From Klebsormidium nitens (taxonomy: Eukaryota > Plantae > Klebsormidiophyceae): a stretch of 64,000 nt of DNA. The notes beneath the pieces are model-generated. The model was not told the DNA's origin. It did no database searches and saw only the letters and a program-made list of their open reading frames with translations. Position numbers and translations under genes: made by a program. The DNA lies in the NCBI GenBank assembly GCA_000708835.1, contig DF237133.1, forward strand, positions 93,215-157,214, written 5' to 3'. Of the stretch, positions 38,746 through 45,231 are shown piece after piece. The stretch's first letter is position 1. The number at the start of each line of letters is the position of its first letter.

Positions 38746-39858
38746 CCCATAGGTGCCTTGTGTCTCAGTGCAGCTGAGCACGCCCTCAAGATCAGGCGGC
38801 CTAGCTCCAACAATATTGAACTGATTGCATGGGTTAGGCTTAGCTCATTGCATATGCATCATGGCGGTCCCCTTGGTAAACAACGCGCATCGCAAGCTCA
38901 TGCAGGCCCTCCGGGTATATATACTATTTATTTTTTAAAAACTGATATGCACATGTTGAGAATGTGCACGTGCCAGTCGGAGAGCTAGCCTGCCGTCCAT
39001 TCCTTAACGCTGGCATATGTACGCATGTGCCTAATTTGCACTTATAGTATAAGTCATGTCAGATGTATACACGCCATGAAGGATCGGTACTATAGTCTCC
39101 AGCTGGTTGCAATGATACTATGTTCGCGGCCATATGCATGCATGACATACTCATGCGCAAACGATCGATCATCAGATTGCCACTTACGTCGAGTGCTTAA
39201 TTTGAAAATGCAAGAGTATTAATAACGTGCCGCGATTTAATTTCGACCTGCAAAGCCTAGATCAGGTTTCACGTGCATGAAATGGTCTGATCGGATCGAT
39301 CTGAATTGTCACGAGAGCTGAGTCCTTGTCCCTTATGTTACAATCGTTGGAAGCTGAGCTAGAATGACCGGATGCCATGAGATCCATAACATTTGTGCCG
39401 AAATTTTTCAGCCCTACCCTACCTCTCAAAGCGCACAAGTTATATGACACCATCAATACATGCTGCCCGGCTTGACTTCATCGTAGTGTCTTTGCTGCCA
39501 GAATTGCGTCTCCTCGTTAAGAACCGTGCCGCGGCAAGCAATCAAAGACCTATGCAATTTGTCTATGGCTAGCGTGCTTCTCAGGTTTATCCGTTCTTGA
39601 TCCGGGCCACTTGATTGTAGACACAAGCGTATTATATATCGATCCGGCAAGCAGGACCGTACATGTCAGTTTTGGTTGACAACGGTGTTTCGAATTTCTG
39701 CTTTTTCTGGCACCTCGCCGCTGTGCAACAAAAAGAAGGTGTTGGGGTCAGCGGAGCATTGGAAGGATTGAGGAGAGGATGAGTAACGTCTTAGGTCTAT
39801 GTCAAACAATATTCTATGTTAAGAGGAAGCAACCAAAGCACTTACCGAAGATGACACC

Positions 39859-42800
39859 TCATAACAGAAGAGGCTGAGCGGCTTCGTCGGCTTGGCACAC
39901 AAACGGATGCTGTAGTAACTGCAACAGAGACCGAACGAGGAAGCTCACATGTAAAGATGCATCGGTTTAGTGGCCTGGGCAGGACTGGCAGTTCCTGAAA
40001 GCGAGCGACTCTTGTCATGACGCATACAACGTACATAGATTCAACACTTAACGTGGCTTCCAAAGGTCAACCTGAGGCACAGCGAAGACTAGCCCTCTAT
40101 GATAGTCCATAATCTATCACCGCTATGTTGTCTGGTCAGCCTGTGTGTGGCAAAGCTCTTCTCCTCACCTGTGTGGCCGTTGGACGTTCCTTCGGGTCTA
40201 GTGCAAAGCAAAGACTCAAAAAGTCATGTGCCAAGGGAGACGCGTCCTTCGGTGTTGGGGGTGCCATGGGAGACGCGTCCAATATATTCCTGGGCCATGC
40301 TTTGTCCACGGCACGGTAATAGGGCTCCGCCTTCCACGTGTACAAGAAGCTGCGCGAAGGGTAACTGCGGAGGCCAGTTGAAAGATTAGTTGCAAGAATC
40401 GAACCCTAAGCTGAAAAGATTTGAGGCTATCCAGACACTAAAGCATCCCCGTGTCGCTGCTGCAACGAGACGACAGGGTAGATGATTGAAGCGCATGAAA
40501 CATACTTGGTGTGACTCCCACATGAGCAGGAACAAACCCTGGGGCTTCCGGAAATGGTAGTGCGTTGAAACGGAACCGACGGAAAGGCTAAGACACCGAT
40601 CCTGGCCCGTCAAGCAAGCCTGTGAGAGAGAGAAAGCTGCGCTGGTGCACAGCTCCTCGCCAGGAGCACAACCAGGAGGGCAAGAGGAATTGTGCAAGAG
40701 TACTATGCGATTCCTTACCGTCCGGTCAGCATTTGAATGACGGTACAGCCTACGCTCCAGATGTCTGCTTTCCGACCATCTTTAGCGCCCCCGCTGACGT
40801 CCGGGGCCGGCCAGCGTCCCTCGAGCTCCCGGACCCTCCAGGAGGGCAGGATCCCCGTGTCATTGCGGAACGCCTGCCAGATTGGATTGTGTTGCATGAA
40901 ACAACCGGAGTTTAGAAACCAATGCTGTGCAAACAAGGTCTTCCGTATAGAAGCTCTTTCAAAGAATGGGTAATTGCTGGAAACTTCTAGCGAGAACTAA
41001 GCTGCATTCCCGCTCAACCGTTCGGCTCTGATTGTAAACAAGTGCTTCCGTGCATTGACGTTGTTGATGCGGCTCTGCACACCCCAATTGCATGGAACAT
41101 GCCGCTCACTTTCAGAGCGCCAAAACCAGCAAGCTTGATCACGCCGTCCCCATCCATTATAATGTTGCCGCATCTGATGTCCCCGTGAATGATGTTGCAA
41201 TCGTGCAGGTACTCTAGCCCCTGCAGCAGTTGGCACGTGTACACGCGCACTCGCCACTCGTCGAACCCGCCAGAGCAGGGCAATAATTGTTGAATCGACC
41301 AGGGACACACCCACTCCAAGAATACGTACAGCGATCCAGGGACGTCGTCCTCCTCCATGTTGATGAAGCTCACAATGTGCCTGGTACAATCGCATGTGTT
41401 TCGTTCGTTTGGTATTTGGTGCTAAGGAGGCTTCTAATGAAAAACAGGTGGTTTTGACAATAGTTCGGCCCTGCCTCATCGTCGCATACTCTATCCCCAA
41501 TTAATCTGCTCCCAAGAGGGATGCCTTGACAAACAGCGGGTGTTCATTTGATGGGCTAGCACTCCTTTGATGCGTGGTTCTGCTTCTAAGTAAGGATACG
41601 GTGCATTAAAACCAAGCCACGAAGCCGTCCCTTTCAGCAATGGTCAAGCCCACTAGGTCTGTGCCAGCATAGTCTTTGATCATCACGGCCTAAGAACCTC
41701 ACACACAGACACGTAAGTGAGAGCTGCCGAGGCCACGAAAGCATGAAAGGAGCAGATTTTCGAGGAACGAAACAACTCTCAGGCCTGCTGATACTAGGTT
41801 CTCTTCAAGCGATTGGCCTCTCACATAGACCCGTGGAGCTGCCCACCTGTGGTGCATCTTACACGACAATTCGTGCTCTAGGGCTTCCACGTGACGCTGG
41901 TACTCGCCGCCAGACCCGACGATGAGCTGGTGCATCCACTTTAATGTCTCTAGCTGCAACTCCAGACTAATTAGCTGCTTCACAATCATCAGCTGCCCAT
42001 TCTCCTGCACACAAACAAGCGGAAGCAGCGTCAAAAAAGGGGACATTGATCTCGAAAGAGGCGACCTTTTTTAGAGAAGTTGTTGGAGACTATTTAGAGT
42101 AACATGGAGCTCACCACCCTCAGCTGGCCGCTCATCTCGTACAAAAACAGGAGGCAGGTCAAGACCTTCAATTGATAACTAGTTCGTTTGTGCTTTGCAC
42201 AAGGAAAGAGACACGCAGTCAACAAGCACAAGGCCTGACGATAGTCGTTGTCCAAGATGAATGCGAAGCATCCATTGAAGTAAGGGGATCCTGTCAGACC
42301 CTAGCCTGACCGCTCACCTGATTCTTGCCCGCAAAAACCTTCCCATAGGGGCCCAAATGAATTTCCTTCCCCCGAGTCCACACAAGTGATCCCGTCTGTT
42401 CTGTCTCTCCCTCGTCAAACAAGCCTTCCGCACCGGGTGGAACCAGCGCCTTGGGCTTCTTGTTGGGATCGCAGCTGCCATTACACCCCACCTTCTCACA
42501 CGGCCCACCTTGAAGGCGCACGCTCTCAGTGAAAGGTCCCCCCCCAGCAAGACGGCCTTCAACCCCAGACTTCCTACAAAAGTCTGGGGTTGAAGGGCCT
42601 CCCCAGCTGCTGTCCTCAGCAAATGGATCCATCCACTCCAGCTGTACCCCCTCGCTCCTCCCGTAGGTCTTGCCCGCCTGTGTATCAACCTGAACCGTAG
42701 TCAGCAGTATCATAAGGCAGTCAGCAGCCATGAAGTTTGCCGGTTTCATAGCGTCAAAAGTCCTGCCGATGAGGCTTTGAAAAAAGACAATGTATCTACA

Positions 42801-44457
42801 AGTTGGCGCCAACTTTAATGATCAATGTGATGAGATATTCCTCCAACGCTGTAAGGCATGTCATTTGACTATCCTTGTACTGCCCTAAAGCTCCGTTGTA
42901 TGCGACATAGAAATATTCCACATCTGGTTTCCCCACATCCTTCGACTTTCAGCTCCAGCAAGGAAACATGAAAGTAAGATCTAGAACTGTCACGATCTAG
43001 GAAAACAAAGCCCTCTCACCTCTGTCATAGAAGGCAGCCTCAAACCATCGTTGATCTTGTCCCACCCAGCTGCATCCTCCTCAGCGGTTCCTGCTGGTAC
43101 ATTCTGCGACCCGTCTCCTTCAAGCTCCTGACAGTATCACACGAGTTGGACAAGGCTCACGATGATAAGAAGGTGGGCGTCAGTTCATAAAGTCAATAAC
43201 GGCAAAGTTTCACGTGTCCCTGATGTGTTGACAATGCTGTTAGAGCAACCACAATTTTTTACAATGCTAGAAGCCCTGGATCTTGTTCCTTCTCCTCAAC
43301 TGCCGTCCTGAGGGGATTATAACCTGAGATTGACATGCTCTACAAAGAACTACACGTTGATCCCCGTAAGGAGAGCTGAGCTTACCTCACAAATGTCCAT
43401 CGAAGACCCAAAATCAGAGAGACATTGAAAGGATGCCATCGGTGATACCCGCCAGCTCCTTGTCCGAGGAAATGTGGCAGTACAAAGCATTCCTGTTTCT
43501 GACAAGGACAGCCCTGCCAGAAACATAGATTATCTAGCGGTCAAACTCCATTGTAGAGTGCTTTTACAATGAACGATATGCAGAGCGTAGAAGGGCCAAT
43601 AACTACGATTGCTGCTCACCCAACAAAGTAAAGGTCCGGAGATCAGAGGTGCAAAGAATGTGTCATCCAAGCAAGAGCAGTCTTCAAGAGCAGCTGAAAT
43701 GATCATAAGCTATAGTATCAATTGAGAACCCGAGCTGACAGACGCTTACTTGAGGGGACCAGTTTTGAATGTGAAGCATTTTATTGCTAAACTAGGTTCA
43801 AGTCCATTTGCCACACCTCGCCACACTCTTCCCAAGAAAAGAAGCATATCACATGATGTCTGAACACCCACTTCATCAGTAGATTGCTGATGCAGGAGCC
43901 AGAAGAGTAGACCTGAAGAAAGCATTCAAAGGCTTACCAGATCCTACCATCCTTTTCAGGCTCCAGATGCTGGGAAGGGGGCTCGTCATCAAGGAATGAT
44001 TGCCGTCCTCTGCTTGCATTTCTTGCCAGTATACAGCCCTTACAAACCCCTCTCGCAGTTCCTTCTCCTTGTTGCCTAAACTCTTGAAGGTCTCAGGATT
44101 ATTGAGGGGGATCCCTTCGGGCCATCTTAGGTAGCTCCTCAAGACATTGCACTCGTCCGAGCAAAGCTGACTGCTGAGACACCCACGTCCAAGGTCTTCC
44201 ACATGCTCCTTGATATCACGGGTTATTGCCTCCTCGCTCCTCTCCGTCACAGGTCTCGGGTGCTCCAATGTCATAGCAGCACGTTTGATTAGCCACCAGT
44301 ATGCCAATCTCACCAACCGGTGCAGCCTGTCTGATGGCCTTCTCAACTCACACAGCTTGAACTTCGCTCTGTTCCCATCCTCCACCCTCCACTCTGTATC
44401 CCACTTGTCGAAAACTTCTGGGTACAGCTCAGTTAAAGCAGGCTCCGAGGCAGCCAT
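39859..44457 (-). CDS. MAPKKK (STE11/ANP-NPK1-like)-derived probable pseudokinase with an unknown N-terminal domain, 10 inferred exons (44457-43938, 43693-43620, 43498-43391, 43127-43020, 42689-42318, 42004-41847, 41380-41110, 40873-40719, 40289-40169, 39918-39859), ~648 aa
   Basis: WTRGKEIHLGPYGKV, IVKQ, LEHEL..HRHIVSF, YTCQLLQGLEYLH..IIHGDIRCGN, IKLAGFG, APD, KADIWSVGCTVIQMLTG, DFLSLCF..P.ERPTATQLLQHPF. GT-AG exons sum to 1947 nt without a stop. The N-terminal exons are linked by phase only. Confidence 0.82.
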
Positions 44458-45231
44458 TTAGAGCCGCCTCAAACCTTCCCACTTTCAGAGAGCGAGGAGC
44501 ATCAAGGCTGAGCGATTGAATGAATGAGGAAGGCGTGCTCCAAATGGCTCCCGGCACGCAGCGCTCACGACGCTCACCTGCTGCAGGAGCTGCAGGCTGG
44601 CGCATGGCGCCATAAGTGCAGGCCGTGAATGATATGACCTTCAGGCTTTGGTTGACGATCTCCGTCCGATGGATACGGCCATGTACGACCGTCGGATGAC
44701 AATGGTTGGTCAAGCTCGGTCTTCTGCTGCCTTATTACCGTAAATCAAAAACTTTCAGTGTTCCTATTGGATGATGAGCGTCGGCGGTCGCCATGTGGGA
44801 AAACCACATGACGCCCGTGAACATTCGCACTGATGCATGCGACCATCGATGGCTCATTCCGATCCGCTGCAATCACCGTCCGATAAGCCCATTCGCCAGT
44901 CGTCTTGGCCGGACCTTAATTGCATGCTACACTGTGACACTGTGCCCTGCAGCCCTGCTCTCCTGCTGGCCCGAGCTTGCATCAGTGTCTCTTTGTATCT
45001 TCGTATACCCCAGATGGACCCCAGATGGACGGACTTTGGACGCCTAATTTATGTTTTCTTGCTCAGGCTCCAAAGGAGTCCCAAAGCCCATGAATTTTCG
45101 TCAATGCGAGCACAGTGCAATCGTTGCCACCGGCCGGCCCTTATTTGATTGCCGGTCAATCGTCCTCCGATTTCCTGGGGTTGCCTGCTCGTGCCACGAG
45201 GGTTCCTTGACACCAAGACGGACCAAGGGAT

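Follow-up and report, generated by a model that had tools for sequence, protein, structure and literature searches.

A MEKK-type kinase gene of the alga Klebsormidium nitens encodes a probable pseudokinase behind a genus-restricted helical module

We analyzed a window of 64,000 nt from the streptophyte alga Klebsormidium nitens (assembly GCA_000708835.1, contig DF237133.1, positions 93,215 to 157,214), a stretch of intron-rich, eukaryotic DNA of ~52% G+C that carries on its minus strand, from 44457 to 39859, an expressed gene in which an orphan N-terminal domain is joined to a kinase domain of the MEKK type. On balance, and with somewhat better than even confidence, we read its product as a lineage-specific pseudokinase derived from a mitogen-activated protein kinase kinase kinase (MAPKKK). 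Having lost the DFG Asp, the opening Gly of its Gly-loop, the Ala of VAIK, two Gly after the hinge, the Arg of HRD, the catalytic-loop Lys and the P+1 GT-P, the protein would no longer work as a conventional MAPKKK. It may instead serve a MAPK-type pathway without catalysis, whether as a scaffold, a decoy or an allosteric partner. Its two-exon N-terminal module (N-module), which is also found on a PB1 protein of the same genome, would have been shuffled and would serve in targeting or interaction. An initial annotation, made from the letters of the window, had proposed a different role, namely a convergent counterpart of the cell-death pseudokinase MLKL with the N-terminal domain as effector, and had named a decaying kinase duplicate as the simpler alternative.

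The gene model is based on contigs from four public runs (X1, X7, X16 and X20) placed on positions 39700 to 44600. All four runs behave as RNA and together define nine joints, every one GT..AG on the minus strand and each supported by spliced contigs of three to four runs from different studies; in X1, word depth was ~5–20 on intron-retaining contigs compared to ~100–750 on exons. The exon chain is assembled from overlaps of short contigs and not from one molecule: the joints between exons 1 and 2 and between exons 2 and 3 were each seen in three runs, while single contigs bridge exons 3 and 4 (X7 record 23), exons 4 to 6 (X16 record 11) and exons 5 to 8 (X20 record 17). Given this chain of nine joints, the N-terminal open reading frame (ORF; 44457–43938) is spliced to the kinase exons and the gene is expressed; neither a separate N-terminal transcript nor an unexpressed gene, the two conditions on which the initial annotation would have been refuted, is borne out by the contigs. 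Phase arithmetic and exon-wise translation yield a reading frame of 655 codons in nine coding exons, running from an ATG at 44457, immediately preceded by an in-frame TAA, to a stop codon at 39861–39859. Splicing is close to the ten-exon, stop-free model proposed initially, except that the tenth exon of the transcript is non-coding and lies in the 3' untranslated region (UTR). The features, with the evidence for each in brackets, are as follows:

44458 to 44600, minus strand: 5' leader of at least 143 nt (unbroken contigs over 43937–44600 in X1, X7 and X16, continuing past 44600)
43938 to 44457, minus strand: coding exon 1, residues 1–173 plus 1 nt, orphan N-terminal domain, predicted to be helical with a folded core at about residues 8–155 (ORF; AlphaFold2 model; no Pfam match; family of six proteins)
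43386 to 43513, minus strand: coding exon 2, residues 174–216, conserved Ser-rich motif (..SW R.. FGSSMDI) in a region modeled with low confidence (RNA joints; common to the PB1 paralogue)
43020 to 43127, minus strand: coding exon 3, residues 217–252, acidic linker with a net charge of −7 (RNA joints; composition)
42318 to 42689, minus strand: coding exon 4, residues 253–376, linker rich in Gly, Ser, Pro and Glu, then the start of the kinase domain with the Gly-loop HLGPYGKV at 42336–42359 (RNA joints; translation; alignment)
41847 to 42004, minus strand: coding exon 5, residues 377–429, beta3 IVK with Lys385 at 41978–41980, a 12-residue insert and alphaC Glu421 (RNA joints; alignment)
41110 to 41380, minus strand: coding exon 6, residues 429–519, alphaD to alphaE, HGDIRCGN at 41164–41187 and GFG for DFG at 41119–41127 (Pfam Pkinase, E = 1.1e-15; PDB matches to MAP3K2 and to the GCN2 pseudokinase domain; alignment)
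40719 to 40873, minus strand: coding exon 7, residues 520–571, activation segment without the P+1 GT-P, APD at 40799–40807 and alphaF KADIWSVGCT (Pfam; PDB matches; alignment)
40169 to 40364, minus strand: coding exon 8, residues 571–636, diverged but full-length alphaG region, alphaH and the Arg of subdomain XI (spanned entirely by X20 record 17 with no internal joint; aligns to NPK1-like kinases)
39846 to 39918, minus strand: exon 9, last 19 codons (LLQHPF...), stop codon at 39861–39859 and 13 nt of 3'UTR (RNA joints; splice sites; alignment)
39721 to 39845, minus strand: 3'UTR intron of 125 nt, GT..AG (joint in all four runs)
39700 to 39720, minus strand: start of exon 10, 3'UTR (RNA joint)

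The public record of this gene is GAQ84321.1, a 631-residue protein labeled ‘MEKK and related serine/threonine protein kinases [Klebsormidium nitens]’, to which the exon 1 translation is 100% identical over residues 1–173 in an exhaustive phmmer search. The record is identical to the RNA-supported model through residue 580 (..SRSFLYT), beyond which it mis-splices exon 8, shifts frame, passes the true stop and enters the 3'UTR exon (stretch affected, 39859–40364). Because RNA coverage is unbroken over exon 8, with no internal joint, and because exons 8 and 9, once translated, match NPK1-like kinases collinearly across alphaH and subdomain XI, the correct product is the 655-residue protein ending in LLQHPFVCQADEAAQPLLL, and the C-terminus of the public model is mis-annotated. 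The tenth coding exon of the initial annotation may likewise have come from splitting exon 8. A literature search returned no paper that names GAQ84321 or A0A1Y1I579. The analysis was carried out on the single exons and on GAQ84321.1.

Catalytic motifs were read from an alignment of the K. nitens protein with six active-looking relatives. The Gly-loop IGxGAFGxV has become IHLGPYGKV (G363H), and beta3 AVK reads IVK, with Lys385 kept and the VAIK Ala replaced by Ile383. A 12-residue insert stands ahead of alphaC, whose Glu421 is kept, and PGGS after the hinge has become CPWS (G455P/G456W). In the catalytic loop, HRDIKGAN is replaced by HGDIRCGN (K498R), which keeps Asp496 and Asn501; DFG is replaced by GFG (D514G); and in the P+1 loop GTPYWMAPE the GTP is lost and APE reads APD. 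Both alphaF (KADIWSVGCT) and subdomain XI (DP.ERPTA..LL.HPF) are kept, as are 48 of the 69 columns that are invariant across the six relatives (70%), including those of alphaE. As defined in PMC13519141, a pseudokinase lacks one or more of three residues: the VAIK Lys, the HRD Asp and the DFG Asp. Judged by its sequence, the MAPKKK-derived domain is a pseudokinase under this definition, with Gly514 in place of the DFG Asp and with Lys385 and Asp496 kept.

These readings bear out most of the initial description of the kinase domain, in which HLGPYG, HGDIRCGN, GFG and APD had all been located correctly and the beta3 Lys and the core of the C-lobe had been seen as kept. The initial claim of a largely missing alphaG region is not borne out. 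Exon 7 ends at position 193 of the Pfam profile and exon 8 resumes at position 218 after 26 residues, so that the gap is filled one-for-one, and the stretch that separates exon 7 from the conserved DFL block measures ~35 residues compared to 24 in NPK1-like kinases (~11 longer). By alignment, the alphaG region is therefore diverged in sequence rather than deleted.

The ancestry of the domain was traced by profile and similarity searches. The Pfam Pkinase profile (PF00069) matches residues 358–575 of GAQ84321.1 with 107.3 bits (cut-off, 31.7 bits), and exons 6, 7 and 8 each match it in the correct profile order. In a PDB sequence search MAP3K2 was the best match (102 bits), followed by ASK1 (79 bits) and others at 71 bits or less; for exon 6 alone the top PDB match was a GCN2 chain, mostly via its pseudokinase domain. 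When the kinase region was searched against 5.8 billion proteins, the best named matches were plant NPK1-like MAPKKKs (36–39% identity, 119–127 bits), with nematode MEKK2 at 89–97 bits. Best-hit evidence thus places the domain in the STE11/MEKK group, as an NPK1/ANP-like member, and not with Raf, RLK or other groups, in keeping with the STE11/ANP-like C-lobe described initially. A word search with the whole protein gave no orthologue and just weak, generic kinase matches, the conserved C-lobe containing few words, and neither the whole-protein nor the kinase-region search turned up a full-length orthologue of the fusion.

The N-terminal domain is rich in Trp and Leu (7 and 20, respectively, in the 173 residues of exon 1), carries a net charge of −2 with an acidic N-terminus and has no match to a Pfam family. 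An AlphaFold2 model built from six sequences (predicted local distance difference test (pLDDT) 70.8, predicted template modeling score 0.68) shows six helices at residues 13–27, 41–62, 75–89, 97–110, 121–126 and 129–155. A second model that included exon 2, built from three sequences, was poorer (pLDDT 50.9) and was used solely to show that residues 151–218 are of low confidence. Since these residues reach a pLDDT of just 25–36, the domain is predicted to be all-helical and folded over ~150 residues, which supports the Trp/Leu-rich and helical character initially assigned to it but not the proposed length of ~235 residues, of which ~150 fold with confidence. Between this domain and the kinase lies a low-complexity acidic and Ser-rich linker of ~200 residues, probably disordered (69% disorder-promoting residues in exons 3 and 4), which opens with the conserved Ser-rich motif of exon 2 that is common to the PB1 paralogue and continues for ~140 residues beyond it.

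Two short patterns were observed in these regions. Residues 85–103 (44149–44205, minus strand) contain a His-x7-Cys-x5-Cys-x3-Cys cluster that is kept in four of five full N-terminal domains, the PB1 paralogue having lost all three Cys; it sits in the loop that is modeled with least confidence and may be a metal or redox site. In exon 3 (43020–43127, minus strand), EEDAAGWDKI combines acidic residues with a following W-x-x-I and thereby resembles an ATG8-interacting (AIM/LIR) motif, as a pattern match only.

A phmmer search with the N-terminal domain recovered six proteins, the query included, among 1.84 billion representatives. All four with a named source are from Klebsormidium, and the remaining two are ORFs on genomic contigs of a single Logan sample; a profile search with the family added no further members. 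The domain is therefore restricted to Klebsormidium-type algae. Four of the five relatives begin at the position homologous to the ATG at 44457, and the PB1 paralogue begins ~30 residues earlier. Both K. subtile members are transcripts, of 263 and 895 residues, and the longer consists of the N-terminal domain, a long Ser/Pro-rich region, a hydrophobic segment (possibly a transmembrane helix) and a C-terminal region without a Pfam match. Neither Logan contig (L001 or L002) carries kinase exons downstream of its N-domain copy. The copy at L002:8419-8903 (SRR23617307) is split across two frames, possibly as a pseudogene or by an intron, and a Sel1-repeat ORF lies ~2.5 kb downstream of it.

The second K. 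nitens member, GAQ84845.1, is annotated as ‘PB1 domain-containing protein’ and is encoded on contig DF237157.1 (L003:6001-7970). It carries the same two-exon N-module, 60% identical and with identical intron positions and phases, but ends in a PB1 domain where the product of the window gene has the linker and pseudokinase. The shared intron positions and phases imply that both exons of the module were copied together and linked to different 3' parts. The introns of the two genes have no similarity and could not be aligned. Between the paralogues, Nei–Gojobori estimates for exon 1 were 0.274 non-synonymous (dN) and 0.527 synonymous (dS) substitutions per site, giving a dN/dS ratio (omega) of 0.52 with a bootstrap 95% confidence interval of 0.35–0.81; omega reached 1 in 1 of 1,000 replicates (0.1%). 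For exon 2, with just 42 codons, omega was ~0.83. Averaged over both paralogues, the N-module is thus under purifying but rather relaxed selection. A tblastn search found no paralogue of any exon elsewhere in the 64-kb window.

Several of these results weigh against reading the protein as a non-catalytic partner with a shuffled interaction module. On the kinase side, Lys385, Glu421, Asp496 and Asn501 are all retained, and by our own count the changed invariant columns comprise ~7 of 17 catalytic and ~14 of 52 other positions; as this is no clear catalytic enrichment, we do not claim a targeted loss of catalysis. Moreover, the plant Raf-like kinase ILK1, with GFG and a non-RD loop, is reported to retain kinase activity, and CASK requires no cofactor (PMC9403797), so that GFG combined with a non-RD loop is no proof of inactivity. 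On the side of the N-module, an omega of ~0.5 for exon 1 and ~0.8 for exon 2 is fairly relaxed, and these figures cover the N-module only, no orthologue of the kinase half having been found in the K. subtile transcripts, the Logan sample or the protein searches. A modeled complex of the N-terminal domain with that of GAQ84845.1 scored 0.00, with the partner poorly folded in the model, and counts neither for nor against an interaction.

The retained residues and the precedents of ILK1 and CASK are what an atypical active kinase would predict, one that tolerates GFG and HGD and still phosphorylates its substrates, possibly using Mn or no metal at all. We consider this unlikely, given that the nucleotide pocket is changed jointly at many positions (G363H, A383I, G455P/G456W, K498R and D514G) and the P+1 GT-P is deleted as well. 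Also unlikely, and a little more so, is a lineage-specific fusion in slow decay or without function whose transcription persists, although the absence of an orthologue of the same architecture from the K. subtile transcripts and the other alga-like sample, the strong divergence of the kinase (~40% identity to its nearest relatives) and an N-module omega only moderately below 1 all point that way. Such decay sits poorly with an intact frame of 655 codons whose nine canonical introns are efficiently spliced in several studies, with an exon 1 omega significantly below 1 and with the preservation of 70% of the family-invariant kinase columns, including those of alphaE, alphaF and subdomain XI. The decaying duplicate offered in the initial annotation is weakened by the expression, the intact frame and the N-domain omega of 0.52; it could still apply to the kinase half. 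We keep a MAPKKK-derived, non-catalytic pseudokinase as the preferred reading.

The proposed analogy with MLKL was evaluated mainly through the fold of the N-terminal domain. Under this hypothesis the pseudokinase would restrain a helical executioner that, once released, kills by attacking membranes. MLKL does carry GFE and HGK motifs behind a four-helix bundle (PMC5104457), as the initial annotation had stated, and the GFG and HG motifs and the layout of the K. nitens protein are reminiscent of it; in addition, the N-terminal domain is modular and occurs on different C-terminal parts, as executioner domains often do. A Foldseek search of the PDB with the N-domain model gave a best E-value of 0.7 and TM-scores of 0.24–0.29, to HEPN toxins, and searches of the ESM Atlas by shape and by features gave nothing useful (TM-scores up to 0.45). 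Among 48,161 representative chains compared with VIA-align, the best match was an unrelated 75-residue archaeal protein (Z = 5.9), the coiled-coil (CC) domain of ZAR1 ranked seventh, tied with many unrelated bundles (Z = 4.3), and no MLKL chain was present in the best 50 rows (lowest Z = 3.5); by the tool's own warning, Z-scores under ~13 mean little for helical bundles. The comparison with four-helix-bundle, HeLo and CC-type folds that the initial annotation had called for therefore gave nothing above the noise of helical bundles, in searches that are weak tests for small helical domains and with a model of only moderate quality (pLDDT 70.8). An HEPN identity for the domain, suggested by recurrent weak rows (TM-scores 0.21–0.29), was rejected since R-x4-H is not conserved in the family.

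The remaining features of the protein also differ from those of the known MLKLs. In plant MLKLs, described from seed plants, a five-helix brace lies between a HeLo domain and a pseudokinase, and in animal and plant MLKLs alike the brace couples the bundle to the pseudokinase (10.1101/681015). The K. nitens protein has no brace and a ~200-residue linker in its place, and its slightly acidic N-terminal domain begins with an acidic N-terminus, not with an alpha1 that is basic or hydrophobic. Among the best 60 PDB sequence matches of its kinase domain there was no MLKL chain and MEKK kinases led, consistent with an ancestry that is MEKK and not MLKL- or RIPK-like. With no fold match, an acidic N-terminal domain and a linker for a brace, the resemblance to MLKL, as far as sequence and model allow, is one of layout only, and we regard a convergent MLKL-like switch as very improbable. 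More speculative still is a broader proposal, to which we give hardly any credence, that the Klebsormidium-only helical module is an independently evolved effector or adaptor domain, exon-shuffled onto pseudokinase, PB1, membrane-anchored and stand-alone forms, with the pseudokinase version acting as a phosphorylation-released switch analogous to MLKL.

Three further observations concern the transcript ends and the source of the runs. An ATG-started upstream ORF of 42 codons (44485–44613, minus strand) lies inside the probable 5' leader, where contigs continue past 44600. The 3'UTR intron begins only 13 nt past the stop codon and is spliced in four of four runs; under the ~50-nt rule, an intron this close to the stop is too near to trigger nonsense-mediated decay. 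The sequences of the four runs do not differ, and the runs, although labeled as two organisms, have zero base differences over 4.9 kb, introns included, and so are probably from the same strain under two names.

The K. nitens gene adds to the kinome a MAPKKK of the MEKK/ANP branch that has likely turned pseudokinase, in a streptophyte alga near the origin of land plants, together with a genus-restricted helical module shuffled between signaling domains (pseudokinase and PB1) and a corrected public gene model. It provides no evidence for an algal executioner of the necroptosis type. It is of value chiefly for annotating the kinome, and it also illustrates, on a small scale, signaling innovation within one lineage. 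As a pseudokinase with an orphan N-terminal domain it is a minor curiosity and does not amount to a new death switch.

Compared with known systems, the protein shares with MLKL the order of a helical N-terminal domain followed by a pseudokinase, as well as the replacement of the DFG Asp and of the HRD Arg by Gly (compare GFE and HGK in MLKL; PMC5104457). The pseudokinase of MLKL regulates its N-terminal domain; the K. nitens protein has no four-helix-bundle or HeLo fold detectable in searches of a moderate model, has a linker where MLKL has brace helices, keeps the catalytic Asp and descends from MEKKs instead of from MLKL/RIPK-type (TKL) kinases. The ILK1-type Raf-like MAP3K pseudokinases of plants are likewise MAP3K-class proteins of the plant lineage with GFG and a non-RD loop (PMC9403797). 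They sit on the Raf-like (TKL) branch and have ankyrin repeats, whereas the K. nitens protein falls on the MEKK branch and carries an orphan N-terminal domain.

By score, the nearest relatives of the kinase domain are plant NPK1/ANP and animal MEKK2/3, with which it shares a conserved alphaE (YT.QLLQGLEYLH), alphaF (ADIWSVGCT) and subdomain XI. It differs from them in its unrelated N-terminal domain, in the 12-residue insert between beta3 and alphaC and at motif positions that are changed or lost, namely the DFG Asp, the leading Gly of the Gly-loop, the Ala of VAIK, the Arg of HRD, the Lys of the catalytic loop and the GT-P of the P+1 loop. In NPK1 the region C-terminal to the kinase domain is regulatory and binds kinesin; the corresponding region of NPK1/ANP is absent here, and the RNA-supported protein stops 19 residues past subdomain XI.

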